Positions 1 through 56,279 are shown, numbered from the whole stretch's first letter. The stretch: DNA of 62,829 nucleotides, filler included, from Klebsormidium nitens (GCA_000708835.1; 11 parts of 11 records of this genome joined end to end with filler, not necessarily neighbours in it), one strand, 5' to 3'. The notes: generated from the sequence alone by a model not told the origin. Numbers and translations are program-made.

Positions 1-21
1 CGTGTGAACCCTGTCCAACCG

Positions 22-8013: not shown

Positions 8014-8365
8014 TGTTGAAACACAGCGTGGCTGGAAGTGATATTGAATCAATCAAGTTCACCCAATGTATATAGAGTGTGTCAAGTCGTGGCCTAGCTT
8101 TAGGTCTACACTACTAGCCTAGTAGGCTCAGTGGAGTGTCACTATGTAAGTTCAAAGACTTCACTCTATACCGCACCTCGATGGCTAATATGGAACCTAC
8201 TTCATATCGACGGTTATCGTAATAAGTCATTCGGGTGTTACCGTCGAAACCCTAACTCCAAATTACCGTCAAACAACCGTCGACGTTTCCAGCGCCCAAT
8301 CTTTAATTTGCGGTCCCAAACTTCTAGTCTTAGATTCCATGTGTCTACGCTCCTTAATCTTAACA
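8014..8365 (-). mobile_element. 3' LTR (352 bp) of a second copia family, nested in the protease site of the first
   Basis: TG...CA termini (TGTTG/TAACA). PPT TGGGGGAG adjacent on the minus strand, followed by RNase H. A second copy of this LTR starts at 12669. Confidence 0.82.
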
Positions 8366-8799: not shown

Positions 8800-8899
8800 N
8801 NNNNNNNNNNNNNNNNNNNNNNNNNNNNNNNNNNNNNNNNNNNTTAATTAATTAANNNNNNNNNNNNNNNNNNNNNNNNNNNNNNNNNNNNNNNNNNNN

Positions 8900-11120: not shown

Positions 11121-12668
11121 TGGTTCTCTCATGTCAATGAAGGCATCGGTAGGAGCGGTCTGCTTTATCGTGGATGCTCTTTGAGCACAGCGACATTTGA
11201 AAGCCCGTAAGGGGGATCAAGAGGCAGGGAAAGCCTAAAAGGAAATTTTCCACCTTTGGTCCTGAGAAGGAGAGAAAGGGAACGCAATCCCTAAAATGGC
11301 CGACGGATACAAGGTCCACATCGATAAGTTGGATGTGCAGAATTATAGAACGTGGAGTTCAAAGCCTTGAGTTTCTTCTTACTTCCAAGGATCTGTGGAA
11401 CGGGGTTGAGGATCCCGTAGCGCACCCTGCTCAATCAAAGAAAGCGTTGTCCATCATCGGGCTAAACGTTGAGGACCACCATTTAGGATCGATTGAGGAG
11501 TGCAAAACCGCAAAGGAGGCGTGGGATCTCCTTGAGAAGACCTACAAGAGCAAAACCAATGCAAGGAAGATGCAACTCAGGCAAGAGTTGCATTCTCTCA
11601 AGATGAAGTCGGGTGAGCCCGTGACCATGTATGTGGGTCGGGCAAAGGATCTGTATAGGGACCTGGTCGCCACCGGTTTTGAGAAGAAGCCAGATGAGTT
11701 GGCATGGAGCGTGCTTGCGGGATTGCCCAAGACGTTAAGTAACCCTGAGAACAATCCTCGAGGCTTCGGAGAGCGCCATTAGCTCGGTGGATGCGATTCT
11801 GCCGAAGCTCTTGGTGCATGAGCAGGGGTTTGAGGAGTCGCCCAAGGAAAAGGGCGGCGGTGGGTCAGACTCCGCTGTGGCCTATGTGGCCGGGCGGAAA
11901 GGGGGCAAGGAGAAGAGCCACGGCAAGGATGAGAGCCGGGGCAAGGGTCCCAAGTGCTATTATTGCGGGGAGTTTGGCCACATTGTTCGGAAGTGCGGCA
12001 AGCCGGATAGGCGGGAGCACAAGCCGGAGCAGAAGAAGGGGGGGAAACCTCCCAAGGGTGTGGCCTCGATGTGGCCTTTAGCGTCATTGAGGGGGTGTCG
12101 ACCGACGAGGGGCTCGTCGATTCGGGGGGCTCCCAACACCTAACCGGGGACAAGAGCCTATTTGAGACCCTCGAAATGTTCGGGGGGAGTGGCCGAGAGT
12201 TCACGTTCGGGGACAAGGAAATCCTATGGGCAGAGGGGAGCGGCTCGGTCCAGCTGCGATGTGCGACACCGACTGGAGAAAGTTTGGTCACTCTGCAGAA
12301 CGTGATGTATGTCCCGGGGGTGGCGGCGAATTTGATCTCGGTGAGCAAGGCCACCGAGGTTGCGTCAGTGCTGTTCAAGGAGAACGGCAACTGCGAGCTT
12401 GAGGTTGACGGGGAGGTAGTCCTTGTGGCTCGGAAGGTGAAGGGTGTCTATGTGATCAACCGGGCGGAGAAGGAGACGTGCTTCCTTGTGAAGAAGCCGG
12501 AAACGGCGGAGTTGTGGCACCGTCGGTTGGGACACGCTGGGTACGAAAACTTGGCGAAAATGGTGCAGGGAGACCTCGTGGAAGGGGTCGGGGTGAAACC
12601 GAGTGCGTTCAGGGCGCTTAAGACCTCGGTGTGTGAGCCCTGCATTATGGGGAAGCAAACTAGGCTCT
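11121..12668 (+). pseudogene. Ty1/copia gag-pol 5' half (UBN2 gag, CCHC knuckle, protease, GAG-pre-integrase), frameshifted and truncated by an LTR insertion
   Basis: ATG at 11296 (MADGYKVHIDKLDVQNYRTWS). KTAKEAWDLLEKTY...LRQELHSLKM; CYYCGEFGHIVRKC; LVDSGGSQHLT; LWHRRLGHAGY...CEPCIMGKQTR. At least three frameshifts. Confidence 0.92.
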
Positions 12669-12728
12669 GTTAGAAACACAGCGTTGTTGGAAGTGATATT
12701 CAATCAATCAAGTTCACACAATGTATAT
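12669..12728 (-). mobile_element. End of an LTR of the 8014-8365 family, inserted into the copia integrase region (rest in gap)
   Basis: TGTTAGAAACACAGCGTTGTTGGAAGTGATATTCAATCAATCAAGTTCACACAATGTATAT is nearly identical to 8014-8073. Confidence 0.82.
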
Positions 12729-13147
12729 NNNNNNNNNNNNNNNNNNNNNNNNNNNNNNNNNNNNNNNNNNNNTTAATTAATTAANNNNNNNNNNNNNNNN
12801 NNNNNNNNNNNNNNNNNNNNNNNNNNNNCCCGGCCTTGTCTTCAGAGAAAAGGTCAAGGCCCCGGTCCACATAGCCACCACCCGAGCACAATTTTTGGAC
12901 ATAAGCACTATCGTATGCATGTAATTGCGCCCATTGTTAACGTTGAAAAATGCTTTTCCGATACATCCATAGTCTACCATCTCTGACCTGTGGGCTAAAA
13001 GATGATATGTTAGCTTGAAAAAGCATGTATGCCAGCCGAAATCCGGCTGGGGCTTCGCCCCAAGCCAAAGGCCAACAGCCCCCCCCCCTCCCCGCCTTCG
13101 GTTGGTTGAAGCAACCCAAGCCCCCCCCCCCAACAGAATACCTAAGG

Positions 13148-13184
13148 GGGTGCCACTTCAAAGTGACGGTACCCTTACTTCTAG
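13148..13184 (+). mobile_element. Possible Helitron 3' terminus
   Basis: Imperfect hairpin GGGTGCC-ACTT-CA-AAGT-GAC-GGTACCC (13148-13174), then TTACTT-CTAG followed by T. Confidence 0.33.
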
Positions 13185-14323
13185 TAGTTGTGCTTCCTCT
13201 TGAAAGGCGCTCAAGGCGCGTTTATTTCAACATTTCTTCCATCACAAGTGGAAACTAGATCGAAGCGTCCTCTCCAACTTTATAAGGGAATGCTTTGAAG
13301 TTTGATCCGTCCAGACCATTACCATGGTGCAGTCAGGACTGCAGTCAGAGATTAGTAGACTGGCTCAGCTTGGGCAGGCAGGGCAAAGTTGCGCACAGAA
13401 CTTGGCCATGTGACGTGAACGGCGGCTGGCAAGCCCATGATCCGATCCTGCATTGAAAGTTTGGGGTGATACCTGAGGACTGCATTCAGGATGGCACACC
13501 GCCCTGTAAGAGGCGAAGCACTGGGATTGTCGGAGTGCTCGTTTGTGGAGGCGGGGCGCCTGTTGCGCATCTTCCTAGCGGCGCGCAAGGAGCTGATAAC
13601 GGATGCGCCAGACACGTTTGCTCAGCTCTTGGCTGTCAGGCAGTCTCTTGAGCATTTAGGGGGGCCAACCAACGCTCTGAGGCAGGCTGACAGGTAAGGT
13701 TTCTCACTTTCTTTGTTTGATTCTGCCTGGTTAATGGGGGCCAATCTGTGAAGGAACTTACTGTTTTCAAACCACTCTCAGGTGCTCGTCCTGACTGTTT
13801 TCCTCAGAACTTTCAAATAGTGGCATTTTAAGGCACTCCGATGCACATTGCGGTCGCCCTGATGTTAGGCCACTTCAGCTTTCATTGCATTGATCTGCCT
13901 GATTCGGGGCGGCCTCTGCATGAAGTTGCAGGTTTTAGAGACTTATCTGTAGGCTCCTGAAGTCAGCTTTTGGAAACAGTTTTTGGGTGCTCGCGTCGAT
14001 GTGGTTCTCAAAAATAGCCAAGCAGGACCAGATCGAGGGGACGCCGATGCAGGTTAACTTCGCATCAACCGCGGGTCATTTTCATTGTTGGTACACTTTT
14101 TCTGCAGAGTGTATGGAGCAACTCGATTTCCGTCCTTCAGGCAAATGCTATTCCTCTGTTTCGCTGACAGCTGACGGAGCTCAATAACATGTCGATGGAG
14201 TGGTGGTACATTTTTGTTGCCAGCCTGTTTGCTGTACCACAGAAAGGAGTCTTTGGGCCCACTTTCTTGAAGTATCCAAGTATGGAAGTTGTATCCAAGT
14301 TCGCCTCCCACTCCTGAACCCCC

Positions 14324-15712
14324 TTGACCGCTGCCTTACTCTGCAGCAGAACCTCCATGAGGACCGCTGCACAACCCCCAACTGCTCCAAAAACGCCGTC
14401 TGGTCAAACGCCGCAAACTGAAGCAGGGAAGGCTAAAGATCCTGTTGGTCAGGCTGGAGTGGCATCCGCTGGTGTGGAAGCTTTAGGCACCCCTGCAAGT
14501 CTGGAGCAGCAGCGAAAGGAGGAGAAGCAGAGGAGGAAAGAGGAAAGGCGACGCCAGAAAGAGGAAGCCAGGGGGAAAGACGGTGGTGCTGCGTTGCCAG
14601 AGGTGGCCGCGGCGGCGCAAAGAGTTGCAGCGGGTGGAGGAGGGCTAAATGAGGAGGAAAGGAGACGGGAACAGAAGCGACTTAGAAAGGAAGAGAGGCG
14701 GCGAAAGAGGGAAGTGGTCGCAAATGGGGTTGAGGCAGGGGGTGGGGAGGAGTCAGGGCTTGGTGTTGGCTTGAGCACTTCTGGTCAGAATGACGGCGCC
14801 TTGCGAGGGATTTCGAGAGAAGAGGACGAGCTGAGGAAACAAAAGGAGGAGAAGCGGAGGAGGAAAGAGGAGAGGAAAAGGGCAAAGGAGCGGGAGGGGA
14901 CATTGGACGCTGCTGCGCCGCCACCTGTCAGCGCGCCGTTGGGCGGAGTTGCTTCCACCAAGAGGCCGTCAGAAGAACTAGAGGTGGATCAGCAAAAGGA
15001 GGAGAAGCGGAGGAGGAAAGAGGAAAGGCGACGCCAGAAAGAGGACGGCAAAGAGAAGGATGGTGTGCCAGACGCGGGTGCCGCAGCGCAAACAGCTGCA
15101 TCGGGTGAAGGAGAGCGGAATGAGGAGGAAAGGAGACGGGAAGAAAAACGGCTTATTAAGGAGGAGCGGCGGCGAGAGAGGGAAGCGGCCGCGAACGGAG
15201 TCAAGGCCGGGGATCGGGTGGAGTCGGGGCTTGGTGGTGTTGACAATTCTTGGAGTCAGAATCAAAAGAGTGTCCCGTGAGGGACTTTTGTACAAGAGGA
15301 AGAGCGGAGGAGAGCGAAGGAGGAGAAGCAAAGGAGGAAAGAGGAGCGGAAAAAGGCGAGAGAACTCGGGGAGGTGCCGGATGCCGCTGTGCCGCCACCT
15401 GTCAGCGCAGCGTTGGTTGGAGCTGCTTCCACCAAGAGGCCGTCAGAAGAACCAGACGGAGATCAAAAACGGGGTCAGAAGCGAGCGAAAGTGGACACGC
15501 CGCAGGTTATGAGTAAGAGGCCTAGAGAAGAGGAGAACGGATTGGAAATGGAAAAGCCCGTTGGAAAGAAGCAGCGAGGAGATAGACTGCCAAGGTTAAG
15601 TGTTCAACCGAACGGGGTGTCAGCGGGCAATACTGACGAGGAGGCTGTGAGAAAAGGAGAGCAGGGCAGGCAGAAGGAGCAGAAGGGGAGGGCGAGGGAC
15701 ATGGTTGGATAG
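14324..15712 (+). pseudogene. K/E/R-rich repetitive protein with a ~480-bp internal duplication and one in-frame TGA (15278-15280); upstream exon around 13500-13693
   Basis: ORFs 14324-15280 and 15374-15712 share a frame, separated by a single TGA that aligns with CGA (14804) in the first repeat copy. Repeated KEEKRRRKEERRRQKE motifs. GTAAGG donor at 13694. Confidence 0.5.
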
Positions 15713-17725
15713 CCCTGGGATCAGCGGCGAGGCGGAGAGGATTCAGCGGGTACTTTCCAAACGAGGAGATATTCAGCTTTGCATCCCAAGTGGGGAGCGG
15801 CGGGGGTGGTGATAGCAAAGTCAAAGGTTTGCCTGCCTTTGTCGTTGTGGTTGAGAAGAGGTAAGGGGGCACCAATTACGTAATCGAAAGGCTGTCAAGT
15901 GGTTGCGTCTAGGAGTCAGAGTGGCTTGGCGTACGCTCCCAGCTTGCTATGAAGCTATGAAAGGCGCGTACTCGGTGTACAAACTCTCCGGCCGGAATTG
16001 AGCCGCCTGCAAAACCTACAACAAAGTTTGGACTTAATTCAACGGTTATGCAACACCGTCCCTTTTAGTGCCGGCCTGGCATGCCGATCATGTTCCTTCT
16101 ACATCTAGCTTTGAATATTGAGGACATATCTGCCAGCTTAATTGCAACTATGCCTTGCCAAGGTTCGCTGGGCCTCATAGCTCTCAGTATTTGACTTGAG
16201 GCTCGTTAAGATAATGAAGTCATCCCCACTTCAACCATGTCAAAGAAGTTGGCCATTCGGTCGCCAGGCAACTGGCGGTTGCTGTTCCATCCATCCATTA
16301 GGTACGTTTTCCTTGGAGCAGTCGCGACCATACATGCATCATACCATCTCATATAATGTTATACATCAAACAACAAGCAAACCGCTGCATGACACCTGCA
16401 ATGATGCATATGGTGGGGATCGGATCCAATCTACTGCGTTGAGCTGATGAAGTCAACCATGCATATAGCATTGTTGCATACGCAAAATTGGCGCGGCCTC
16501 TTGAGTACGTATATGATGTCTCATGATACAAACAGTTGTGGCCGCTAAAGATCGGACATGCAGTGATACTGCATATTGAATTCATCGACAGTCGATCCGA
16601 CAGGTCCGTACGTCCGAATCATCATGTGTTGGTTGCGCTCGCTGGCAACACAAGCTAGCTTGCGAGTCGGGTATACACGTCGCGAACTCAAAAGAAATAG
16701 CTAGAGATGAGTTGCATGATGAGTCGCCATGCCATGTATTCAACAATTGTAGACAAGAGCTCGCTAGGTTCAGTATTCTAGCCCTCGGCCAAGCTACTCT
16801 TGTCTATCTTTGCTTGAGTCACCATCTTCTTCCGCGGGTTTTGCCGCGAGCTTGCGAGCCACGAAGCTCGTTACTAGAAACGGGGCGACAGTGTCCTTTA
16901 TCGCAGATGCGATTGCATCTTTGAGTGCCGCATTCTTGGACCAGAGGCTCAGACCGGGGAAGAAGGTGCGTATCACCGGTAGTGGCGGCCAGGTATGCCG
17001 CCAGAAACATTAGCGCTAGCAAAATCTCATGCGGCGAAAGGCCGCCGAACTCCTGCTCAAGAGAGAGGGATGAGCTGTTATTGTCTTGTCAAACGGCGCA
17101 TATGACGCACATATGACGTAACATCCGCATTGATCAGGTCACATACAAGTCAATCAAGTTCGACTCCGGAGGCCAGGCTAAGTCACGCTATTTCACTAAC
17201 GTAATCTTCAGTAGGCATCTGTATCTGTGCAAGGAACTTGAATCCTTGCTTGTACGTTCCTGGAATGTATTCACAACGGCTGAACGGAATTGTCAAGCTC
17301 AAAGTAGAACTACGTACTTCATGAAATCTCTATATTATTGAGGCAATCTTCGTGTTTCTGAGAAAGATCCAAGTTACCCCGCTTCAAACACAATAATATA
17401 CAATTCCCGAAAAAAAGTGAGGAACTCGTCTCGTCGCAAGCAAGTCGTCGTCCTTGCTAGTGCTCAAAGAGGCTTCCGGAATGCTTACAAAGTGTGCAGA
17501 TATCTGGATCGTCCGATTTGTCGGAGCTTCCTGTCCCCTCGTTGTCCAGATTATCAAGGGCACGCCGCTGAAACTCACCTGGTTGATGGTCGATGCTGTC
17601 GAGGTGGAAACCTCCGTAAGGCGATTAATCGCGACCATGAGCTCGTGGGTCTCCGGGCCTTCTGGAAAAAAGATGATTATGAGCTTCAAAGTGACGTCAA
17701 CAAGAAGCTTGCATCAAGAGCCCTG

Positions 17726-18035
17726 TGTTGGAAATCAGCTAGAGACAGCACACATGGATGCAGAGGTTCACACAAAGCACATGGGAGGCGCCCTTCACTC
17801 TCAATTGCACAAAGGCACACTCTTGTTATGATGCAGGTTTGAGTCAGGTCTCTGTCCTAACTTCCGGCCTACCCAGATCTACTTCTAGAGACTTCCAGAT
17901 CTGGGGTACTCCCCTTACTCCGAGTCACGCAACCTAGATTCGGGTCTAACTCGATCTAATTCCGACTCTAACCCTCAAACCCTAATCTACTAACCCTAAT
18001 GTTTGGCGTCCGGATTGTCTCGTCACAATCCAACA
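17726..18035 (-). mobile_element. 3' LTR (310 bp) of a third LTR family (body in gap)
   Basis: Perfect 7-bp terminal inverted repeat TGTTGGA...TCCAACA. PPT GTGGGGGAG abuts it on the minus strand. Two telo-like AACCCTAA motifs. Confidence 0.8.
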
Positions 18036-18198
18036 CTCCCCCACGCCGAACATTATCTCTCTTTCCACACTGCCTCTCGATTACATCCCTAGCAATTNNN
18101 NNNNNNNNNNNNNNNNNNNNNNNNNNNNNNNNNNNNNNNNNTTAATTAATTAANNNNNNNNNNNNNNNNNNNNNNNNNNNNNNNNNNNNNNNNNNNNA

Positions 18199-18282
18199 CT
18201 GCCAGGACTCGAACCCTGGCCAGGCTGGGGCTCGAGGCTCAAGCCGTCCGACCAAACTCTTTGCCCACTGGGCTAAAAAGAG
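18199..18282 (-). mobile_element. tRNA-derived SINE-like head (Pol III A and B boxes)
   Basis: Minus strand: TAGCCCAGTGG (A box) ... GGTTCGAGTCC (B box) within the stem GCCAGG-GTTCGAGT-CCTGGC. No valid cloverleaf. Truncated by the gap. Confidence 0.5.
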
Positions 18283-18315
18283 CGCGTACGTTTACTCAAC
18301 CTTGCAAATCTCAAA

Positions 18316-18606
18316 TCTATATAATAAAATTATTCGGCAGTGTACGGCCGTAAATCCTGGAACCGATATCGACGACCGTCATTCCTTACACGTGGCAGAT
18401 TCCTATGTTCTTGCCCTGTCGCAACAGCACGAGAGCAGTTTCAACGTTCGACGCGGTTCGGTACGCTTAGTCGATATTCTGCGCCAGTCATCCAGAGTCA
18501 GCTCCGAAGATATCTACACTTCCGTTTTTTTTCGATCCGTCGCTTTCAAACCCCAGGTTGTCGCGGCCGTCCGATAAAGCGGATCGGCCGTTCAACAGGG
18601 AATTAG
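18316..18606 (+). mobile_element. Possible short non-autonomous Helitron
   Basis: 5' A|TCTATATAATAAAAT. 3' hairpin CGGCCG-TCCG-ATAAAG-CGGA-T-CGGCCG followed by TTAG|T (non-canonical; CTAG expected). Confidence 0.28.
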
Positions 18607-43639: not shown

Positions 43640-43745
43640 NNNNNNNNNNNNNNNNNNNNNNNNNNNNNNNNNNNNNNNNNNNNTTAATTAATTAANNNNN
43701 NNNNNNNNNNNNNNNNNNNNNNNNNNNNNNNNNNNNNNNCCAAAC

Positions 43746-44145
43746 AGAAGGCCTGATTTTTTGGGGCAAAAGCTTGGACACTTAGACAGTTGGCGGTATG
43801 CGGGACTCTGTCTTGAAGGCGTATCCAAGTGTTCAAGGTCCTTCGTAATATTGTCTGAGTGTAATTGTTGACGTCACCGAAAAGAAGGCCTGATTTGTTT
43901 TGGCAAAAGCTTGGACACTTGGACAGCTGGCAGTATGTGCTTGGTCTTGGAGGCTTGTTCAAGTTTCGAGGTCTTCCAAATAATTGTTTGTGTATTGTTG
44001 CTGACATCATCGAAAAGAAGCCCTAATGTTTTTTTGGTAAAAGCTTGGACATTTGGACAGCCGCCGGTATCCGATCGCTCTTGGGGGCTTGTCCAAGTGT
44101 CCAAGGTTTAATGGAAGAATGTGTGGTGTAGTTGCTGACGTCATC
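43746..44145. repeat. Tandem array of three ~135-bp units, each carrying an internal inverted repeat
   Basis: Unit starts (AGAAG) at 43746, 43883 and 44016. Left arm AAAAGCTTGGACA(C/T)TT(G/A)GACAG; right arm TGTCCAAGTGTCCAAGG (best preserved in unit 3). Confidence 0.85.
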
Positions 44146-45081
44146 ATAGAAGTCCGAATGTCAGCGCAGCCTGCCGCCACACATACAGCAAGAATTGCCA
44201 GCGCCAGAGGTACGCTTTTTGAGGCTTTGCACAGAACTTACCATGTCCTTAACTTTGGCTGCTCCGCAGGAAACGGGAAGGGGGTACTGAAAGAGGTGCT
44301 GCAAGCTGCTACCGGTGATTACTTCGGCGGCATGTCTAAGGATGCAGTGGTTACAGCCCCCGGCCAGAAATCTTCCTCGAAGAACGCCCCTACCAACTAC
44401 ATCTACGAGCTGATGGGCGTGCGGCTTGCCGTCACCGATGAGACGGCAGAGGGAGAACGAGTGGATTTGGGGCTCCTCCTAGGAATGACCGGCGGGGGTA
44501 AGACAAAGGCGCGTTGTCTGTATGGAAATAACGTAGAGTTCACCATCACTCACACGCCCTTCGTCCAAACGAATTACCCGCCCGCAATGTCTGCAACCGC
44601 AATCAAGGAGAACGTCCTGCGCCGCCTGCGAGTGATCCCGTTTCCGAACAGCTATGTTGGCGCCGACACCTTTGATCCCAATAATGCAACCCACCGCCGG
44701 CGAGACGACGGACTCAAAGATCGCATGAAGGAGGAGGAGTCTCTTCGGCAAGTACTCTCGTGGTTAGCCCGCGGTTCGGTTGAGTGGTATACTAGTACCG
44801 ACGGGCTTGGGCGTCCTCCTCAAGCGGTGCAGAGTGCGACGCGTGAATATGTGACCGAGGCAGACAAATTGCAGCTATTTCTCGACCAGCATTGTGCGTT
44901 CGGAGAGGGGCTTTCCATCCTACAGGCCGAATTTGCCACCCTCTATCGCGAGTTTTCCTCAGAGAGGGTTTCAAATGAGGAGTTGGCAAGGAGGATGGAA
45001 AAGCAGGGGTTCAAGAGGCTCAAGAACGGAACGCCGCGACAATTGTATTATCCAAAGATAAGGTGCGAGTACACATTCTGA
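44053..45081 (+). CDS. D5/P4-type primase-helicase C-terminal part (SF3 helicase plus winged helix); primase/N-terminal domain absent
   Basis: Walker A-like AGNGKG, Walker B RLAVTDE, MTGGGKTKARCLY, motif C QTNYPP, RRLRVIPF, C-terminal FLDQHC...LYREF...LARRMEKQGF. The ORF-track start lies inside the repeat array, so the true start is uncertain. Confidence 0.85.
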   Translation: MDSRRYPIALGGLSKCPRFNGRMCGVVADVIIEVRMSAQPAATHTARIASARGTLFEALHRTYHVLNFGCSAGNGKGVLKEVLQAATGDYFGGMSKDAVVTAPGQKSSSKNAPTNYIYELMGVRLAVTDETAEGERVDLGLLLGMTGGGKTKARCLYGNNVEFTITHTPFVQTNYPPAMSATAIKENVLRRLRVIPFPNSYVGADTFDPNNATHRRRDDGLKDRMKEEESLRQVLSWLARGSVEWYTSTDGLGRPPQAVQSATREYVTEADKLQLFLDQHCAFGEGLSILQAEFATLYREFSSERVSNEELARRMEKQGFKRLKNGTPRQLYYPKIRCEYTF

Positions 45082-45353
45082 TAGTTCTTTCAGGTTTACA
45101 GCCTGGTACGTAAGTTAGATCGAGGACTTAGACAAGGTAAATAGCCTCCACTTGGAAACATGAGTATAAGATATGTCAAAAAGTCTTGCCAAGAATCTAT
45201 ACGTATACGGTGACACTTTGGCCCGGGTTAGAAACATAAGCTGGCTTATCGAAAGAAGACCCTTGAACAGATTGTTTTAATAACCGTATGATGACGTCAG
45301 CATGTTGCGGCCAAGATTGTTTTTGCCAGGATATCCAGGACAAAAGCTAATTG

Positions 45354-45893
45354 CTAGACCACCTGCCCGAGTGGTTGGCACCCGGCTTTTTGAGCTTTGC
45401 TCGTATATACCAAGTTTGCAATTTTGTCCGATCTCAGATCAGCTCCATCAATCAGTAAGTAGCTGGATGCATGCTCCAATAATGTAATGATCTGATGTTG
45501 GTGAAATATCTCGTCGTTGATGATAAGGTCGTAACTCTGATCTTGCTCTGCCGGTTTTGCCAGCATGCACATGAGTCTTTCATATAGATCGCCTAGTGTA
45601 AGACTGTTTGCCTTTGTTTGTTGCTCAACAATTTTGCGGATGAGAAGGCATAAACCAACAACAATGATTTTCGTGCTTTGCGTCGAAAGCCCAATTCGCA
45701 GAATGCATGGATAGTGCTTCATGCCAGTGCCGGTCGATAGGTTCTTGCATCGGGCTAAATCGATCTCTTTATCAAAGACGCTGTTAACATTCGACCTTGA
45801 CATATCCATTTCCATTGCTGGTACTCGAGGCCAAACCCCATACTTATCGTTAAAAAAAAATGGTTCACCGAATGCGTTTCCAGGAATGAGCAT
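45354..45893 (-). CDS. Intronless hypothetical protein
   Basis: 179-aa open frame with globular composition; no motif recognised. Confidence 0.33.
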   Translation of the reverse strand: MLIPGNAFGEPFFFNDKYGVWPRVPAMEMDMSRSNVNSVFDKEIDLARCKNLSTGTGMKHYPCILRIGLSTQSTKIIVVGLCLLIRKIVEQQTKANSLTLGDLYERLMCMLAKPAEQDQSYDLIINDEIFHQHQIITLLEHASSYLLIDGADLRSDKIANLVYTSKAQKAGCQPLGQVV

Positions 45894-45925
45894 AGCTCAA
45901 TTCTGACCCAAAAATTAAATGTACA

Positions 45926-46580
45926 TCATATGGCTTTTGACGTATTCCCATCAGGTTTCTTTGGGTGTAGTACACGTGAATATCTTCTATTGGTCCCTTT
46001 TTCCTTATTGGTTCCCTTCACCAACTTTGACGGTGCTTGAGTCTTGCGTTTTGGTACAGTATCAACTTTCGACTCGTCATCTAATGGCTCCTCTGTCTCC
46101 GAGAGTTGTTTGTTAGTAGCTTTCAACGGAGGCTTGTTTTGCCTGCATGACGTCCAGCTTGAAATGGCATCAACGGAAAACTTCATTGTATGCGTTCGAT
46201 AGGTCCCAGCAAAAGGAAGACCGGTTGGTTGTTCGGCCTTTTTCAAGGTCTCGATATTGACTTGATATGCAAACAACCTCCCTTTAGATTTACGGGTAGT
46301 TTCTACCAATAGAACATAGTAGACCAGAGGGGGTCGACATGTTTTAGTTGCTTCCGGCTTCATGCTTCTGTATAAGGTGGAACCAATTCTAGCGCCCGCT
46401 TGAAGGGGGCGACCGCTTTTTTCATTAATTTGGAGCCGGCTGCTCCGAACTCTATCGGTCAAGTCTATTTTACAACTACCACCGAAAGCTGCTTGTACTC
46501 GAAAAGACCTTATTGTTTCAGACGCCATGATAAATCCGTATGTTACTACCTCGACAGAAAAAATGTTATTGGTCATGTGA
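45926..46580 (-). CDS. Intronless hypothetical protein (fused in the ORF track to the LINE tail)
   Basis: Open frame from MTNNIFSVEVV with a basic C-terminal tail; no motif recognised. Confidence 0.33.
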
Positions 46581-46679
46581 TGCGTGATCTCCTTTTTATT
46601 ATGTTCACTAGCTAAGTGCTCTTGTGCGGGAGGTGCATCCGCAGAAGCCCGAGTGCAGATATTTCTCCCTTGCAATGCG

Positions 46680-47150
46680 TCCTGCTTACTAAGAAACGAC
46701 TTCAATTCTCTCTCTGTAAAGGATAGATCGGAAATTTTCCTTATCTCACTATATATAGGACAACGAAACACGAAATGGACCTCATCTTCTACCTCGTTGG
46801 TCTTGCATAACATTCAATACCTCTGGTCTCAAGGCTTCCCTTGCCGAGTCGTGATTTCTGCAGCCAGCCTATGAGCCCCAACTCTAAGCCTTGCTACCGT
46901 GGGCAGGACGGGCATATCGCTAGTCTACTCAAGTAGGACTCGTACGAATCACCTTGCTTCACATCCTTGACGTAATGTGTCCATACTGCTCCCTCAAATC
47001 TTGCATGTATGCAAAATCTGCTGAAGTACGAAGAGACTTGATATCAAAGCCTTGTGCCAACTGACCATCACGAACCAATTGCGAGCTTTTGCCACCACTA
47101 GAGCGAACCACCCTCCTTGAACGGAAGCCCACATACTTTTGACTCCTCTA
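46680..47150 (-). mobile_element. 3' fragment of a non-LTR retrotransposon ORF2 (C-terminal Cys/His motif)
   Basis: ARLRVGAHRL...DQRY*MLCKTNEVEDEVHFVFRCPIYSEIR matches the LINE C-terminal pattern R-x-G-x-H-x-L...C-x2-C...EDExH...CP-x-Y-x2-IR. Contains stops. Confidence 0.6.
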
Positions 47151-47899
47151 GCGCTTGTCGAGCCAATCTGTCCTCCACGAGACTAGAAGTTCCATGAAGA
47201 AACTTAGAAATCTGTTCCAAGCGCTGAATGACCACTCAAAAACGGCCAAATAGTACAGGTACGGCGCGCCTGATCATTTCCAATACGACCGCACGTACAC
47301 GTCGGCATATGCGCATTTGCAATCGTGCCTGCGGCTTTCTCAAAGTTCGGCAACTCTACATGCTTGATGGTCGCAAGCGCATGCAAGAGACGAATAGAGA
47401 ACATGCATTTTTGGAAAACTTGGCCGCATGCATGCAATCCACCGCAATACATGCACATGTGCCGTCGGACTCCGTGAATGTACCGGCAGCCTAAATTCAC
47501 TGGCGCAGATCAATATATATTTATGTGCAAACCTGAACTTAACTTGTTGCCCGTCTCTTATGCATGATCGGGTGATCCTCGTCGTAGTGTTCCCTTTCAG
47601 TCCACCAGCTCCAAAAATTGGATCAATCTGTTTAGCCATACACCACCAAGGGCGTGCTAAAGTCATTGTAAAACCAAGGATTTACGAACTTCCGATTTAC
47701 ATGCATTACATGCATGAAGCATTTGCACGCCAGGGCTAACCTTGAACGCACATATATGCAACTAATTGCCTGCTAGGAAGCACTTTCTGTTACAAGTACG
47801 ACATTGGTAGCGAGCGCTTTCCACAGTAGCAATGCAAGACGCAATTTGTCTGGTGCAAAAGGCCAAAAATCCGTTCGCTTCTATCATTGCAAACACTCC

Positions 47900-50800
47900 T
47901 TCAGCATTTACTCATTCAATCAGCAACGGGCGGAGGGAACACGTGATCACAACAAATCCGCTTTGTCCCACACTAATTCCTCCAGGTTTCTTGCCTCTCC
48001 ATGCCTTTTCCAATCGCGAGCCCAACCCTTCCTGTCCATCCTCTTCAACATCTTGTCGCGGCGAACCGCCCTTTTATGCAGATCTTCCTCCAGTCTCGTC
48101 CTCACGTCTTCCCACGTCCACTTCGTGACCCGTTGACCAATTCCGATTAGAAGTTGGCTCTCCAGGAAGGCCCACGTCGACGGTCCCGGTTCTCCAATCA
48201 GGGGGACTTTTGTAAAAGTATGAAGCTAGAATGGAGGGAAACAAGAAAAGACGGAGTAAGCGGTCTTGAAAAAGCTGCAGAGTCGCTTTTCCTTACCACT
48301 GTTCCTTTCATTAGCATTATTACAGCAATTTGCAGTTGGAACTTCCTTCTTTATCTGGCTAATAGCTACCCCAAGAGCATGAGAATGAACGTTCCGGCTT
48401 CATGTACGACCGCCTACTTTCGTCAGCAAATGCCTTCTACAGAGAGTAGATGTCCCGTCTGAAAAGCATGGTGCCAGGCTGCGAGAAATTTTCAGTCCTT
48501 TACTCGGAACAAGGTTCGGACACAGTGATTAAACACACTCTCTGTCGACAATCAACAGAATCTGCTCACTGACAGCTTGACAGCTTGCGCAGCTTGTGCA
48601 GAGGCCTGCCTTTCTACCTTTCTATGGAAGCTTTAGCTTTCACCAGCAACTGGATCGTCCAGTAAGTGGAGTAAGCCCACCAAAAACCCTCACAAGCTCA
48701 TGTGCATGTCTCTGTAAACCATTCAGGTACCCGACTTTAACGCATCCTTATTCTTTTTTTGGAACATTCCAGTAGCGAACGATATACTTCCGAAGGAAGA
48801 AAAACTCACCGAGTCGTTTCGATAGAAGTCTCCGACGACGTACTTCCTGGCGGGCAGCCGGGCATCCTCTGGCTTTACACCATAGCGTGTTTGCAGAAGC
48901 TCCTCCGCCTCCTTCAACTGGGACTCGAGCTGGTCCCTGCTGACCAGCATCGCCTCGTCGAACACCTTTCTTGGGTGTTGTTGCTTGAACACCTTCTTCT
49001 GTAATTCGTGCGCCGCGGCAAGCGCCTCCGGGGTGATCTTGCCATACTCATCCAGCTGGAGAAGCAAAAGCAATCCGCGTCATATCAAGTGTCTTTCCAG
49101 ACTTCTTGCCTCAATCCACGCCTCGATGTATGGCGGATTGATGACTCGATGACTAGCGGAGAACTTCTTGAACGATTTATTGGACCTTGCCAACAGCTGC
49201 TGTGTGCAGAAACATTTTTTCCAAAGCTTCGCAGCATAGTCCTGTTGGATGTACCACTTTCAGACTTAGTTTACAGAAGGGCAGAAATACGCTCAAAGAC
49301 AGGTCGGTAATGCAAACACACAGAGCTTCGAGAGAAACTATCACATGCAGTGTTTGCCTTGTCATTAACGTGTAGCTTGTCTTCGTCTAATCGACCAAAA
49401 ACTTATTGCTGCATGTGAGCAGAAGGGAAATTCAAGAAAATGAAGGAGATAGGAATCTTAGGAACTCTTCATCTTAGCCCTTCCTCCTTCCCAAAAGCCC
49501 AATGCTTTTCCAAAGGCGTGGTCTTACTTCGATGATGGTCGTAAGAACTGTTTCGGCCCCCAAATAGTGTTCAACATTGAAGAGCTGACTGTAGACCGGA
49601 GAGTACCGCCCATTGCTCGCGTTGACCAGCAGATGGTGACACGAGTAGGCCTCCAGCTGGTTGAAGCCCCCTTGAGACTCATCACTGACCTGGAGAAAGA
49701 CAAAACAAAAGGGATTCAGGAAGGGTGTTGAAGTATGCGGATGTCTCTGGATTTCAGGAAGCAAAGAAAGGCTGACACAGAACATGAAGATCCTTCCTGC
49801 AAGCAACGTAATCGAATTGCAATTACATGTCTGAGAAAGATCTACTCTGCAAATGGGTCGTCCTGCCATTAAGCAGTGTTTCGACCCCTTTCCCATCACC
49901 CCCTTTCCTTAACCCACAATCCAAGCGGTCCCTTTGCCTTCTGGCCCCGACCTTGAGATACACCGAATCAGCATTTTCCTCCCACCATGTACCTGATGTT
50001 CACCCAACTGGACCTCGTTCACCCACACGTCAATCTGTTTTCCAGGTCCCCTGCCCCGACCTTATGAATCTGCAATTATTGGACCAGCATCGACATTCCA
50101 CATTCTGATAGCATTCTTTAATGCGTTTCTTGCCAGCATCACATCCAAAATGAATGAGGTGGTTCAGAGATGAAGTAGCTCATATACTCACCACTATCGT
50201 GGCGGCCCCCTTGCCATCTGTTAGGTTCTTGATCATCTTCGGCAGGTCTGGAAAGCGCTTGTCGCGCACTTTCAACCCGAGGTCAACCGACCAGTGGCCC
50301 ATGGTCAGCTCGTGGGTGAAATCGGGCTCACAGAAGCTGTCAGGCGAATCGCTAGCGGGGTGTATCTGAGGATCCACTGGCGGTTTCATCTGATCTTTGG
50401 GTGTCTGCAGAAGCCAGAAAGCTATGACCCGTGGAAGAGAGTTGCACTCGCAAAGCAGCACTTAATCCTCAACATGAAGAATCCTGTTACGACTTTAAGC
50501 TTCATTGCAGCTTTCCTAAAAATTTCAACACAAGGCAAGCTTCAGGATTCATACTTGCTTGAAGAAGTCAGTGCAGGGATTATTTCAGTTCATTTGACCA
50601 GAAAGAAAACGAGACAGCAGGCACCCTCGAGTATCCTGGTTTTACCAGGATACTCACCACCACGTCAGCCCCTTCTGGCTCAGGCTCCGCTCTGGTTGCA
50701 TGCTCCTGCAGCAGGAGGAGCATAAGTCTAAAGCACTGACCTGAAACCGATATGCGCTTGACGCTGAACACGAGAGACTCACCATCAACACATATAGAGC

Positions 50801-51632
50801 TGAGACAAGGATGCAAAAGCTGTGCAGAATCGATGGGCTGTCTAGCCCAGATATTCATCACTGCCAATCACTCACCAGGTGCAATGGTGCAGGGGCGACA
50901 AATGAGTGACCAGCTAAGTAGCACCAGGAAGACGAGCGACAGCTTGCCGAGAAACCCACCAATGAAGCCCTTGTCCTATGGTCACCAGCAGCTTAGGTCC
51001 TTGACACTTACCAACACATTTGCTAACTCCTGCTCCTGGTCCATCCGAGACCTGAAGCGACAGTACTCAGGTTCATCGTCGTCCTCATTCATATCCTGCT
51101 TGGACCCCTCATCATTGATTCTCAAAAGCCTTGAGAGATCGCTTGTCAGAGCGACGATCTTTTTGTGCAGCATTTCAGCGTTTCCCTGCAGCTGCTCGGG
51201 AAGCCTCTTCAATACATCCACAGCTTCTTGAACTGCAGCACTTTGGGCCTCTGGGAGAGGCACAGGGTTGGGGGCAGTCTTCTTGCTCAGGGTCATTATG
51301 AGGATGGGAATGGCTACGAAAGAGAGACGGTTATTTAGCTCGCCAGCCTTGTCACCAAAAGTATCTCTGACAAGCTCCAGTAAAGGCAGCAGGTAGTCAA
51401 ATAATATGCGCTGCAGCAATTCGTGGTCTATTTTGCCCCCAATGTACTTGTTCACGTGCAGATCCCGCTCAGCCATTGCACGGTGCGCCACAAACGGGTT
51501 CGTTATTTTGGAGTCTGTCTTTGTCCAAGACGATGGACCTCGCATGAATGGCGGCTCCTCTTTCTTCATTTTCTTCGATGCTGTACCTGACAATGAGAGG
51601 GACAGAGCCACTCTTTTCTCATTGCCGCCCAT
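47900..51632 (-). pseudogene. Multi-exon hypothetical gene, partly disrupted
   Basis: Series of same-strand open frames (50982-51632, 50180-50461, 49474-49899, 48723-49073, ~47900-48200) bounded by GTGAG/GTAAG donors and pyrimidine-rich AG acceptors. TTTAGGG motif upstream at 51784. No domain recognised. Confidence 0.33.
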
Positions 51633-54424
51633 GTTTGCTACCTCGTCTCCGTTTCTCTGCTGCCGCCTCGAGTAGGTCGCTCTGCTGGTCCAAGGCAGTT
51701 GACAAGTTTTTCAGCCGACGTCAGCCTAGGCACGGGTACGGATCAAGTCCACGTTACTCGAACGGGTGGGGAGGGTTTGGGGGTTTAGGGCGTAAAACCA
51801 TAAAATGTGGTCAGGTGCGAAGCGTAGAAGCTCCTTGATCGGTCACCGACTTCACCCATTCGAAATCCCATATGCTGCTGAGAGCTCGGTACGTATGCGT
51901 ATCCTCGATGTACGTGAACGCATCTCTGGCCTCGCCTCGACGGCAGCAGAGTGCGGACTTGGTAAAATGCCATGGTTTTCGAACACAAATGCTCATTTTC
52001 CAGCTTCCATACCTTCTCAACAGGACCGCCAAGGCGACGAGAGTTGCAACGCCCCAACCTTGAAGCCAGATGTCCGGCTGCCTTCAAAGAGTTGTGAAGA
52101 CCTCAGGCCTGCGCAGAAGCGGCAGGGCCAGTGGTAGCAGAGGCCCCAGTTGCGTGACTTCTGTGGCAATTTGCAAGCAAAATGGTCGTCAGGCTGCCAT
52201 TAGCAGAAGGCAGTGAAGGCGCCTTGTACAACAGCACAAGAGCAGCTTGAATCAATTGCCAATCAACAGGTCATGCGCCATTAGAGAGTAGGATGTCCAT
52301 GTAGTGCATTGGTCGACAGCAAAGACGGCCCAGAGACCAGTATTTGGGCTTTCCCAAATGAAGTGTTACATTTCTCGGGCAGACAAAGAGGGGCTTGCCA
52401 CGATCTTTCTTCCAGATTCTCCAGCTATCCCCCGGGACTAGCTTTCCATGGAGCTGAGAATCGCGTAACGTTGATAAGAAGACTGCATACGCATCCGAGT
52501 ATTGAGCAAAGGGGCGACATTGCGGGCAATAAAAGCCGCCGTTAAAGCTCGACCTTTTCCATCTGCACCAGCGGTGAGCCAGTATCTCTATTCTGATGGA
52601 TCACTTTGTCTTACATATTCAATTATCAAGTCTAGTTGTTGAACATCCGCAAGTCCTTTTTTAGTGCAGGGCGTGAATACATGTTGTATTCCTTGATTGT
52701 AGGGAGTGTGGGGGCTCAACTCCAATTCAGCATCCCTTGCGACTGGGGCCGCCACTACTTCTCAACAGGTGCAGCTTGCTCAGCTTCTTTCCGTGTGGCC
52801 TCATCAGCTGGTGCACCTTGCTCGGTGGCTTGGTCTGCGGTGCCGTCCTCTGCAGGTGTAACATCAACTGTTGTCGTATCATCCTCTGCTGTTGGTGCAG
52901 CCATCTCTGCACTTGGCCAGAACCACAGCGCCATCTCGGCCGGCAACAGCGGCAGAATTGCTGCGGAGCAGTTCACTTGAAAGCTGTTTCGATGGCTTCG
53001 CCATACTTGTTGATGGTCTGAACCTGATCAAGGTGTCCCCCTCATAAATGATTGCGTCAACTCGAGCAGTATCTTTCCAAAGAGTCCAGGCTCTATATCA
53101 AAAGTACTCTTGCGCGCCATTTGATGAGTTCATCGAACCGTTGTAGCGGACTACGTCAACCAAGTCAGGGCCTGTCTGAGCTTGTCCAAGCTGTCCGAAG
53201 TCCGGCATAGATGATTCCTGTCGACTGCGTGCTGACGTCTTCACTTTCAATGTAGCTGACTGCCTCTATCCAATCCAACTGTGTCTGATCTGTCCAAGCT
53301 CTGTATTTGAAAAAGCACACTTACTTGAATTACTGATGTCAGCAATGTTTTATAGCTTTTAGTTGACTGCATTGACTGTTGCTTGCGCAGATGGACGCTG
53401 AGCTGGAGCAGCTACACTTGGACGTTGGACGTTCAGTTGAAACCGGGCAAGCTGGGCAAGCGGGGTAATCGGGTAGGAGGCGATCAAAATGGAGACCCGC
53501 AGCCTCGTCCAGTACGCCGTTGCCAGGTGGGAGTGTCATTGTCGAGTCAGGTTGCGGAAGCTGACGAGGAAGCGGAAGAGTTCGGTTCCGAAGATAGACT
53601 TCTGCTTGGTCAAGTGACTGGGGCGACGTTTGTACTGACAATGACGACCCTTCATGGGACTGGACGACGATTGTGATTCAGAGGAACGGCGGCATACTTC
53701 AGCGTCTGCCGCATCGACCTCCATTCAGGCGGTGATTGGAGGGAATCTGCATCTCAGGTGTGCTCACTCTCAGACTTAAGACTTAAGCTCCTTCCATTTG
53801 CTTCTTGACGACGCTTTTGCCAAGTTGCCTTCATGAATACAAACCCTCAGGAAGTCTGTACCCATCATGTTTCATATTTGAAGCAAGAAACGGAAAGATT
53901 GTGTTGCACTGGACTTAGCCATCTGTTGACTTGAAATCACATGTGGTGGTACAAAGAAACAGAAGAGAACGGAGAGAAGTTTGATTTGGAGTGCCCTGGC
54001 CAATTGGCTTTCGAATCCGTCCTTAACTTGTGTAGTTCAAATGTGTCCGGCTGGGGTAGCATGCTGGCCCTAACCCTCAAGTTGAAAGTCCAATTTGGGG
54101 GGACGTCTTGGTTCTGCGGTCTGATATTGTCCCAAATCTTGTGTGGGTTGAGGACTTGTTCTGACGCCGTGGAGGACGCTCACTCTTGATGGGGTCTTGC
54201 TCATCTTTTTGATCGCCATGCCATTCGCCAAGGCCAATGCTTTTATTTTTTTGAGCCGCATCCGTGGTCGTTAAAGCCTTGGAGGTCTTTCATTCTGGAG
54301 CATGAATTTTTGCACTGCCAAGGTCATTAGTGGTGCGTTTCAGAGCTTCAGGCTTGAAAGTTTGCGTTTAGTGGTTCGTCGAATCTGCGTTGACGTCGTT
54401 TAAAAGCAGTTTGAATTCTCGGAT

Positions 54425-54537
54425 AAAAGCGTGGACAGTTGGACAGCCAGCCATAAGATAATAGTTTTGTGGGGTTCATCTAAGTGTCCAAGGTCTAACG
54501 AGGGATTTGCGTGGTCAGTGTTGTTGCTGATGTCATT
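54425..54537. repeat. Dispersed single copy of the 43746-44145 repeat unit
   Basis: AAAAGCGTGGACAGTTGGACAGCC...ATCTAAGTGTCCAAGGTCTAA...GTTGCTGATGTCAT aligns with unit 3 (44039-44143) with the same arm spacing. Confidence 0.72.
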
Positions 54538-55171
54538 TCAGGCTTAGACCATCTGCAGCTTGCGATGGTAACAAGCTAGGAAATCATAGCGGAAGATTGA
54601 TTAAGTTTTAGCGGGGAGTCTCTTTGTGGGCCCCGGGATTGGGGTGCTCTTCCTTAGCGTATTGTTTGTGTGATGATTGCCCTGGCAGCCAATCTTGAAA
54701 GGAAGTAAGGTCCCTTCATTGAGATTCTTTTCTTGCAGGTACCACGTCCAGCAGCTAGGAGGCTAACGCGGTCAAGGGTTGAGTCGACGGTGCAAATCGA
54801 CATCATCCCACCTGAGTTTTCGAGATTGAATATCTTGTCTACTGATCTTGAATCATACTTCAGAACCATAGCAAATTTTTGTTGCTGTGGTCTCAAGGGC
54901 AGGTCCTTCTTTTCTGTTTTAACATACGAACCGCTTCTGCTAGAGGTTTTGCTACACAAATCTGATAAAGCTCTTTGAAGTAACTATTTATCAATTTGAG
55001 AAAAGTGCACTTTTCTCTAACAAATGCCTTGGCCGCTAGCATTTTCCAACATATAATTGTTGGGTAACATTTCGTTGTCATTATTTTCTGACATCAATGG
55101 TTGATATAAACAGGTCAGCACGTCTGATCGTGTGAAAATTATTGTCGAAACACTGATGTATACCAATAAGT

Positions 55172-56002
55172 ATGGATGCCTTGCGTCAGCTGTTCACTGA
55201 CAATATTCGAACTCAGGCGTCCGTTGACCAATACATAAGGGGCATTGCTCTTATCTACCAATTGTGCCACAATCGACCACTCCCTAGTACAGGCGAGCTA
55301 AGCTTTCTAGAAACAGACGCACACGTCTTCACTCAACTCGTGCATGATCGATATGCAAATCCTGGATCGAGAAGGACGCGATTGGCCCCTTTTCTTGCCG
55401 CTTGTAAAAAGCTCGGAAACTCAGAAGCTTATCAAATATATTTTCAACCGTTTCAGAAGGATAATCAGCCGTTGAAAGAACTTCGTGAGAAACAAGCCGT
55501 TGAATCGGGGCAAAACCCTATGAAAGAACTTGAGATGTCACGTGAAGACATTGAACTTTTGGGTAGCAAGCTTGCCAGAAAGGTCCGATCTTTGTCACAC
55601 GTTGTTGCAGACGACCTCGACAGAAAGGATGTGAAGACCATAATGATACATTTGCTCGTCGAATGGCACCTTCTGATCAAAAAACACGTCAGACGAGGTG
55701 TGAAGATCTATCATTTACCTATCATTCTCAAGAAGAGTAATGGCCAGCACGATGACACCAAGGATGCATTGATCCAGACAAGTCGGTCACATAACACGTT
55801 TTGTTTACTGAAACAACAAGAGTTGTACGAGCTCCCAACAATGTTCTGTAAGTACCTTGCTAGAACGTTAGAGCTCATCCCTCGAGACTTTTTCATAACC
55901 TCAGTGTCTGATCCGCTAACACCAATGTCAGGAAGCAATTACAGCAATTTCTGCGGCAAGCTTCTTTTCAACGAGAAGTCACTCAATCTTGAACGCATCT
56001 AA
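55172..56002 (+). CDS. Tyrosine-recombinase-like protein of the Polinton-like virus/virophage/NCLDV type, probably degenerate at the C-terminus
   Basis: Resembles that family throughout: N-terminal S-x2-Y-x-R-x-I helix (ASVDQYIRGIALIY), SRRTRLAPFL, HLLIKKHVRR (putative catalytic Arg), YELPTMFCKYL, and C-terminal LLFNEKSLNLERI* where R-H-I-Y is expected. Intronless, lower GC than the host genes. Confidence 0.55.
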   Translation: MDALRQLFTDNIRTQASVDQYIRGIALIYQLCHNRPLPSTGELSFLETDAHVFTQLVHDRYANPGSRRTRLAPFLAACKKLGNSEAYQIYFQPFQKDNQPLKELREKQAVESGQNPMKELEMSREDIELLGSKLARKVRSLSHVVADDLDRKDVKTIMIHLLVEWHLLIKKHVRRGVKIYHLPIILKKSNGQHDDTKDALIQTSRSHNTFCLLKQQELYELPTMFCKYLARTLELIPRDFFITSVSDPLTPMSGSNYSNFCGKLLFNEKSLNLERI

Positions 56003-56082
56003 CTAAGACTTGCTTTTTAGGCAAAAAATAAATCTAACGATATGTATAGCTGAAGGACTCCCGCTGCGAAGCTATAAGGAAG

Positions 56083-56279
56083 ATGGCCACACGGGTAGTT
56101 CACATCGAGGGGCCACACAATCAGAGGAGGGCATCGCCACCAGAGTTACCAAAACTAAGGAGCATTCTGAAGGTCAAAGACGGTCGTGATGGCTCAGAGG
56201 CAACGTTACGAGCCGACTCTACGGTAAATGTATACCTCCGTCAGATCCAAAACATATACACAATTCTTAATCCAAACGA
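56083..56279 (+). CDS. N-terminus of a second, paralogous recombinase-like ORF (truncated by gap)
   Basis: LRADSTVNVYLRQIQNIYTILNP parallels IRTQASVDQYIRGIALIYQLCHN of the upstream ORF. Confidence 0.4.

Follow-up and report, generated by a model that had tools for sequence, protein, structure and literature searches.

Primase-helicase and tyrosine recombinase genes in a multi-copy mobile element family of Klebsormidium, a candidate capsid-less integrative replicon

Introduction

Two groups of described mobile elements combine a primase-helicase with a tyrosine recombinase or integrase. The Polinton-like virus (PLV) and virophage-type elements of protists belong to the 15-30 kb size class and are integrated in multiple copies in algal and protist genomes, with a primase-helicase and a tyrosine recombinase as their usual replication and integration pair, and only about half of the known insertions have terminal inverted repeats (TIRs) (PMC10120064). 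Satellite phage P4 and the Sulfolobus pRN1-type plasmids are capsid-less replicons; in P4 alpha and pRN1 ORF904, the primase and superfamily 3 (SF3) helicase are followed by a C-terminal winged-helix DNA-binding domain, which is thought to recognise the origin (PMC2777425). Here, a locus of the streptophyte alga Klebsormidium nitens with likenesses to both groups is described. The window (the whole stretch of DNA that was analysed, 62,829 nucleotides with filler, from assembly GCA_000708835.1) contains at positions 43740-56279 a piece that appears to represent the central portion of an integrated mobile element copy. The element, some 15-17 kb in length or longer, belongs to a family with multiple copies in Klebsormidium. 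The left edge of this piece is at an assembly gap and its right edge cuts a recombinase open reading frame (ORF).

Like PLVs and virophages, the Klebsormidium element is of this size class, is integrated in multiple copies and pairs a primase-helicase with a tyrosine recombinase, whose fold is close to algal giant-virus and virophage proteins; it differs in having two genes for SF3 helicases, a KDZ-like gene that is large and spliced, and introns, and in that no capsid protein, whether major (MCP) or minor, no packaging ATPase, no protease and no TIRs were detected. With P4 and the pRN1-type plasmids it shares an apparently capsid-less make-up, an integrase, a primase-SF3 helicase with a C-terminal domain that is putatively DNA-binding, short repeated sites as a candidate origin and the helicase match to TIGR01613 ('phage/plasmid primase, P4 family'). 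It differs from them in its eukaryotic nuclear host, its spliced genes, an extra large gene and a tandem recombinase pair with one member lacking the catalytic tyrosine (here called the Tyr-less paralog), and in showing no sign here of an episomal form. No description of this recombinase-helicase family was found in the literature.

Here it is proposed, with a probability of roughly 0.6, that the element is a capsid-less integrative replicon, closer in behaviour to integrative plasmids or satellites than to viruses. If this is true, the family joins virus-type replication proteins, plasmid-type integration and intron-bearing transposon-type genes in a close algal relative of land plants, offers a streptophyte case for how capsid-less elements and small DNA viruses interconvert, and accounts for a group of multi-copy 'hypothetical' genes by which Klebsormidium assemblies are fragmented. 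For the window alone the finding is modest, namely a copy that is partial, interrupted and bordered by two assembly gaps.

One interrupted copy of a dispersed family

The piece carries the last exon of a helicase gene and two small ORFs; beyond an 8.15-kb nested segment follow the recombinase pair, with the Tyr-less paralog complete and only the beginning of the tyrosine recombinase gene. Its nearest relatives are from K. nitens, at 88-91% nucleotide identity. The K. nitens contig DF238583.1 is collinear with window positions 43772-46637 (88.5% identity) and then directly with 54808-55125 (85.6%), and the same adjacency of helicase, small ORFs and recombinases is found in two metagenome contigs, L001 and L005 (71-78% identity). 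In these three contigs, the helicase, the two small ORFs and the recombinase pair all lie within ~4 kb. Because the flanking window blocks are adjacent in DF238583.1, L001 and L005, positions 46638-54788 are read as a nested segment.

An initial annotation of this DNA had recorded a D5/P4-type SF3 helicase directly after an array of hairpin units, and a further unit copy upstream of two tandem recombinase-like ORFs. All of these were found again: the array has three tandem units of 134 nt, the fourth copy lies 10 kb from it, and the helicase is represented by its C-terminal part. The annotation had taken the helicase and recombinase loci for two remnants of one family; they are instead a single copy split by a segment that is missing from the closest K. 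nitens copy. Its view that the two sets of genes belong together agrees with the recurrence of the pairing in four independent copies (the window, L001, L005 and the K. nitens contig DF238135.1, L006), and the element family that it had postulated is multi-copy and integrated between host genes.

The related set comprises eight contigs from at least five diverged lineages, covering Klebsormidium-type contigs and one other eukaryote. A conserved gene order was seen in L001/L003, L005, L006, L041/L046, L042/L043, L045 and the distant L048. It runs from an upstream SF3 helicase module (DUF5906/D5-type, with an additional origin-binding-protein-like piece in some copies) through one or two small ORFs on the minus strand, the recombinase or recombinases and a ~94-aa ORF to a PrimPol-D5_N-SF3 helicase of 968-994 aa, followed by a large gene on the opposite strand. 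The five coding parts are all under purifying selection, with ratios of nonsynonymous to synonymous substitution rates (Ka/Ks) of 0.09-0.36.

The upstream helicase gene

The last exon of the upstream ('#1') primase-helicase gene (44269-45081, plus strand) encodes the SF3 core with Walker A (GNGKG) and conserved Walker B and motif C, plus a C-terminal domain. The mechanically called ORF at 44053-45081 corresponds to the last two thirds of the C-terminal domain of P4-family primases (TIGR01613 positions 86-294 of 304, E 1.6e-25); lacking the first third of that domain, the ORF scores 89.6 bits and so falls short of the cut-off of 108.7. It also matches phrog_1156 (E 6e-35) and gave no match in Pfam. 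These matches bear out the earlier call of a D5/P4-type SF3 helicase after a repeat array, and from its core and P4-type C-terminal region the upstream gene is predicted to encode a helicase of this type.

Homology to all relatives begins at ~44266-44269, just 5' of Walker A, and the first ~72 codons of the mechanical ORF, which traverse the third unit of the repeat array, are not conserved. The coding block that precedes the Walker A exon lies ~540 nt upstream in L001 and ~300 nt upstream in K. nitens DF238135.1, the NCBI gene model KFL_011860020 has an intron at this position, and where the homology starts in the window, a run rich in pyrimidines ends in CAG. Together, these observations place the array in a putative shared intron or just upstream of an internal start. 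Prim-Pol and D5_N pieces are found upstream of the helicase in exon-like blocks of L001, L005 and L006; the corresponding exons of the window copy are beyond the gap. The recombinase-like and orphan ORFs of the locus had been described as intronless; this does not extend to the family, which has one putative shared intron in the helicase gene just before Walker A and five introns in the large gene.

Compared with K. nitens, the helicase exon has a Ka/Ks of 0.20, and compared with L001 one of 0.13. The nearest helicase relatives are nine K. nitens proteins on nine scaffolds, together with 'putative DNA primase/helicase' calls from two samples of the Joint Genome Institute (JGI), and one relative (P0007) is derived from a transcriptome. 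The contigs from these JGI samples encode proteins 96-99.5% identical to K. nitens genes. The element genes are a dispersed repeat family.

In K. nitens DF238135.1 (L006, positions 1-8400), the helicase module faces away from the recombinase pair, and it faces toward the pair in the window, L001 and L005. On DF238135.1, the DNA that separates the two modules contains octamer motifs, and the arrangement could represent an inversion or an independent junction.

The tyrosine recombinase pair

Tyrosine recombinases share the catalytic pattern R...K...H-x-x-R...H/W...Y. The second ORF of the pair (56083-56279, plus strand) provides the first 65 codons of a ~360-aa tyrosine recombinase, with 92% amino acid identity to K. 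nitens DF238135.1, before it is cut by the edge of the piece. Its catalytic domain lies beyond this edge, and the catalytic residues were read in relatives rather than in the window copy. Across 20 diverse ~360-aa relatives, the K, the second R and the Y are invariant and the first R and last H near-invariant, with T, S or N in place of the first His of H-x-x-R; as read from these alignments, the family has kept the catalytic residues of the tyrosine recombinase superfamily. The family profile covers 869 cluster representatives. The ~360-aa recombinase gave no direct match in Pfam or among PDB sequences; a transitive link is provided by P0065 (E 1e-20 to the ~360-aa profile), which passes the Pfam family Phage_integrase (PF00589) with 30.5 bits against a cut-off of 27.1. 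The best Foldseek matches of a 364-aa recombinase model (mean predicted confidence, pLDDT, 71) are XerH, Cre and YopR, all weak (E 0.03).

The first ORF (55172-56002, plus strand) encodes the intact 276-aa Tyr-less paralog, with core-binding and catalytic-domain folds, and ends before the His/Tyr box. It had no match in Pfam, PHROGs, NCBIfam or the PDB by sequence, and only fold and profile methods gave matches; its 14 relatives are all from the same kind of source. Nearly all of the top 40 PDB matches of its AlphaFold model (pLDDT 83) are Cre, Xer or lambda integrase (best E 9e-3, probability 0.97). Against BFVD, the model has eight matches at E <= 1e-3, including algal giant-virus proteins at E 7e-5 to 7e-4, one of which is named as a tyrosine recombinase domain protein, and it also matches a protein of Qinghai Lake virophage. 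The predicted structure has the two-domain Cre/lambda-integrase fold, on which the initial annotation had made its proposal depend.

This ORF and all 10 full-length relatives end near the second Arg box and have no segment matching the His/Tyr box. Alignment of the 276-aa family with the catalytic family by hhalign gave a probability of 91.7% (E 7.6e-7, 224 columns); the two families are paralogs. The pair had been annotated as two recombinase-like ORFs. Both do belong to recombinase-type families; the ORF at 55172 lacks the segment with the catalytic tyrosine and is itself no recombinase. With a Ka/Ks of 0.10-0.16, the 276-aa protein is a conserved non-catalytic paralog and not a pseudogene. 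The copy in K. nitens DF238135.1 is broken once, and the window copy is intact. Since the distant relative L048 has a single recombinase, the tandem pair probably arose by duplication within Klebsormidium lineages.

A comparable case is offered by YopR/MrpR of phage SPbeta (PDB 8bj6, 8a0a), mobile-element-encoded proteins with a recombinase fold that is not expected to cut DNA, chains of which are among the fold matches of the 364-aa model. In contrast to these, the Klebsormidium protein stands in tandem with its paralog, a recombinase that is apparently active, and a regulatory role for it would be an analogy only. Conserved as it is, the Tyr-less paralog offers a natural case of a recombinase fold put to non-catalytic use.

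A distant recombinase relative, P0067, was found amid giant-virus-like genes on another contig (L044; JGI 3300060285, Ga0590115_0004573, positions 1-20942), from a sample that also contains Klebsormidium-type contigs. The gene set of this region includes EsV_1_7_cys, DUF5901, SET, methyltransferase, TnpB-like and JmjC genes, and it may be an endogenised region of a nucleocytoplasmic large DNA virus (NCLDV).

The large spliced gene and the element boundaries

The large gene is represented in K. nitens by KFL_014540010 (1308 aa, partial), which aligns with one element copy in six exon blocks at 96-99.5% identity. It contains a Cys cluster with a weak match to CxC4 (E 4.5e-3, 17.3 bits against a cut-off of 26.9), and the large gene of another copy has a weak match to the KDZ transposase (E 9e-4, 19.4 bits against 26.6), with the CxC4 and KDZ regions in the expected order. 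The C-terminal region is conserved in L048. In this Cys cluster and KDZ-like region, known from sub-threshold matches, the gene resembles those of Kyakuja-Dileera-Zisupton (KDZ) transposons, and in its TIR-less integration, presumably by the tyrosine recombinase, the element resembles Cryptons, the tyrosine-recombinase DNA transposons of eukaryotes. Neither Cryptons nor KDZ transposons are known to carry primase-helicases.

The L041/L046 copy is bounded by host genes on both sides, which gives a length of ~15 kb. No inverted repeat longer than 13 nt was found between its end regions, and none in the window. A search for a tRNA or other RNA gene as an integration target found none. The host flanks of one copy, of plant type, are a TIR-NB-ARC-LRR gene and exons with SURP and G-patch domains; on L041 (1-2421), an 807-aa TIR-NB-ARC-LRR gene in a single stop-free frame of 806 codons stands directly beside the element copy.

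The distant copy L048 (European Nucleotide Archive ERZ26165376, ctg343552, 2000-18600) is from another eukaryote. It has the same architecture, and its single recombinase is ~22-27% identical. This copy is flanked by a chromovirus-type (gypsy) long terminal repeat (LTR) retrotransposon and a mitochondrial-type RNA polymerase gene.

Capsid genes and a possible viral origin

No capsid protein, packaging ATPase or protease was matched in Pfam or PHROGs by any ORF of six related loci, a search confined to sequence libraries. The same libraries detected none in any copy, in agreement with the earlier remark that no capsid or packaging ATPase is visible at the locus. The lack of such matches bears on whether the copy in the window is a remnant of an endogenous PLV or virophage, the capsid module of which would lie outside the piece, be lost or be too divergent for recognition. 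The pairing of a primase-helicase with a tyrosine recombinase is the one that 15-30 kb PLV and virophage insertions usually have (PMC10120064), the model of the 55172 ORF resembles algal giant-virus and Qinghai Lake virophage proteins, and relatives of the recombinase occur in the Tara 0.1-0.22 µm fraction. Nevertheless, every ORF of at least 300 aa in the L041/L046 copy is accounted for by the recombinases, the primase-helicase and the large spliced gene, except for a 301-aa ORF at the right edge. Besides the missing matches to capsid, ATPase or protease genes, the copies have no TIRs, two of the genes have introns, and scans of IMG/VR found no relatives of the helicase alignment, of a recombinase, of the 968-aa primase-helicase or of an ORF of the nested segment. 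These observations make a PLV or virophage remnant improbable. The label 'PLV-type', which the recombinases had been given, is not supported, with no MCP, minor capsid protein, ATPase or TIRs and with a large spliced gene that gives weak KDZ and CxC signals. PLVs are not known to carry a large spliced gene of the KDZ-transposase/CxC kind.

A second viral source would be an endogenised giant virus, of which these genes would be phycodnavirus-like NCLDV scraps and not an autonomous element. NCLDV core genes have been reported in Klebsormidium (PMC5294986), the PrimPol-D5_N-SF3 arrangement is the architecture of the NCLDV D5 protein, the recombinase relative P0067 shares its contig with EsV_1_7_cys, DUF5901 and SET genes, and the best BFVD fold matches are NCLDV proteins. 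Scraps of a giant virus would, however, fit poorly with one compact gene order shared by many copies that have diverged (40-90% identity) and have different host genes around them, with Ka/Ks well below 1 between copies and with spliced genes; moreover, the survey of NCLDV genes lists no D5 marker for K. flaccidum (PMC5294986). This origin is considered very unlikely.

Repeat arrays

The piece begins inside a tandem array of three ~134-nt units (43746-44150, plus strand), which is cut on the left by the assembly gap; Tandem Repeats Finder reports a 134-nt unit in 2.7 copies at 43746-44107 (score 420). Each unit contains the double octamer TTGGACAnTTGGACA, an inverted copy 30-33 nt later and a tail with TGACGTCA or a near copy of it. 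The 17-nt arm pattern has 6 occurrences with at most 3 mismatches, against 0.05 expected, and a strong hairpin is predicted only in unit 3 (DNA dG -22.8 kcal/mol, z -5.3). A fourth, decayed unit (54405-54540, plus strand) aligns over the whole unit length with the three tandem units, with 60 of 143 columns invariant. The initial annotation had given weight to a unit copy upstream of the recombinase ORFs; the copy is real, and because it sits in the nested segment, its position there is secondary. The array of K. nitens DF238583.1 likewise precedes the helicase exon.

Perfect TGACGTCA sites are enriched in the piece (3 against 0.12 expected), and one of them is an isolated palindrome at 45292-45299, between the convergent genes for the helicase and for a small ORF of 179 aa. 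Double octamers are present in most related loci, at 4-16 per locus against ~0.1 expected, and always in non-coding element DNA, that is, upstream or downstream of the helicase, upstream of the recombinase pair or in introns of the large gene. All matches in ~190 kb of Klebsormidium-type loci fall in element DNA, and none was found in ~8 kb of host flank (L046). The divergent subfamily L042 has three arrays of its own (4089-4343, 6833-7125 and 17326-17651). Their units measure ~92-98 nt and combine a separate 10-nt inverted motif with an ACGT-core site, and they lie in the region of the large gene and in intergenic DNA, at places comparable to those of the double octamers.

The repeat unit taken separately could be an independent satellite, a repeat like a miniature inverted-repeat transposable element (MITE), or a regulatory module for a host factor based on TGACGTCA, which colonises non-coding DNA and has no role in replication or recombination. 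That a copy has more than one array, both in introns and between genes, and that the period varies agree with this, as do the decayed hairpins, the fourth unit in the nested segment, the enrichment of TGACGTCA and the fact that the window assembly and a K. nitens contig both break inside the array, as happens with high-copy repeats. Against it are the restriction of double octamers to element DNA over the ~190 kb of Klebsormidium-type loci, with none in the L046 host flank, and the analogous arrays of the divergent subfamily with an inverted motif of their own, which would be expected if the sites co-evolve with an element protein. A satellite or regulatory module of this kind is rather unlikely. 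The role as origin or recombination site that the initial annotation had suggested for the unit is conjectural. By analogy with P4 and pRN1, the octamer arrays may instead be iterons, a tentative assignment that is the weakest step in the proposal of a capsid-less replicon.

A metagenome scan with the hairpin pattern gave 34 loci, mostly bacterial, none of which resembles the unit or encodes the helicase or recombinase. On unrelated, mostly bacterial contigs (L019, L020, L023, L025 and L030-L036), intergenic DNA contains the same octamer 3-5 times in tandem and then 3-5 times inverted; the neighbouring genes are of the housekeeping kind (proline dehydrogenase, Usp, Kdo transferase, an ABC transporter and others). 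Such hairpins seem to be simple repeats that arose by convergence and not relatives of the unit.

Proposed mechanism and its weighing

As a capsid-less integrative replicon, the element would be integrated and excised by the recombinase and replicated by the primase-helicases. The Tyr-less paralog would serve as a DNA-binding partner or regulator, in analogy to inactive regulators with a recombinase fold. The double-octamer arrays in non-coding DNA would be iterons for a DNA-binding domain encoded by the element, most likely the C-terminal domain of the SF3 helicases, as in P4 alpha and pRN1 ORF904, and the TGACGTCA core possibly adds regulation by host bZIP-type factors.

Several observations weigh against this proposal. 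Walker A is GKG instead of GK[ST] throughout the Klebsormidium clade (GNGKG, with G for S/T), and in K. nitens DF238135.1 the upstream helicase module is turned differently with respect to the recombinases. The KDZ and CxC4 matches of the large gene are below the Pfam thresholds, and other copies give none. The ends of the element are undefined, with no TIRs or long terminal repeats found, and the capsid search covers sequence libraries only, Pfam and PHROGs, in which PLV capsid proteins are poorly represented. As for the arrays, most hairpins in the window are decayed (units 1 and 2 and the distant copy, z -0.6 to -1.8), one copy may have octamer arrays at as many as five places, introns included, with periods of 50, 71, 81 and 134 nt, and double-octamer arrays as such are absent from two divergent subfamilies; this spread, variable period and decay fit a satellite or MITE as well as iterons.

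A wider form of the proposal is that the family represents a separate class of integrative replicons without a capsid, which in the eukaryotic nucleus would correspond to the P4/pRN-type plasmids, with a tyrosine recombinase, two SF3 modules, a KDZ-like transposase and introns, distributed from Klebsormidium to at least one other eukaryote and using lineage-specific iteron arrays as origins. In this extended form the proposal is doubtful.

Small ORFs and the nested segment

The initial annotation had listed several orphan ORFs in the neighbourhood; those next to the helicase resolve into two conserved minus-strand genes of the family. The ORF at 45354-45893 (179 aa) has 60% amino acid identity to L001 and 43% to L005, with a Ka/Ks of 0.36, and no family match in Pfam, NCBIfam or PHROGs. 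The ORF at 45926-46528 (~200 aa) has a Ka/Ks of 0.18; of the eight related contigs, six have it upstream of their recombinase genes, and L006 and L045 lack it.

The nested segment (46638-54788) is absent from the closest relatives and is flanked by a 6-nt direct repeat, GGTGCA, at 46632-46637 and 54789-54794, which is present as a single copy at the undisturbed K. nitens site. The pair could be a target-site duplication or microhomology, or a chance match. No TIRs or LTRs of the segment were found. At its left edge (46562-47273, minus strand), several frames read somewhat like the C-terminal tail of a non-LTR retrotransposon ORF2, a tentative likeness that Pfam and PDB searches did not support. 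The segment contains exon-like ORFs on the minus strand, with no match in Pfam or PDB, and the fourth repeat unit in its right part, and at 53062-53809 it has short patches that resemble non-coding DNA of other element copies. Its CpG ratio differs slightly from that of the flanks (0.74 against 0.91). Two long stop-free stretches on the minus strand, 50985-51710 (242 aa) and 48726-49079 (118 aa), have a protein-like composition and no relatives in Pfam, PDB or IMG/VR; they may be exons of a gene that was brought in with the nested segment.

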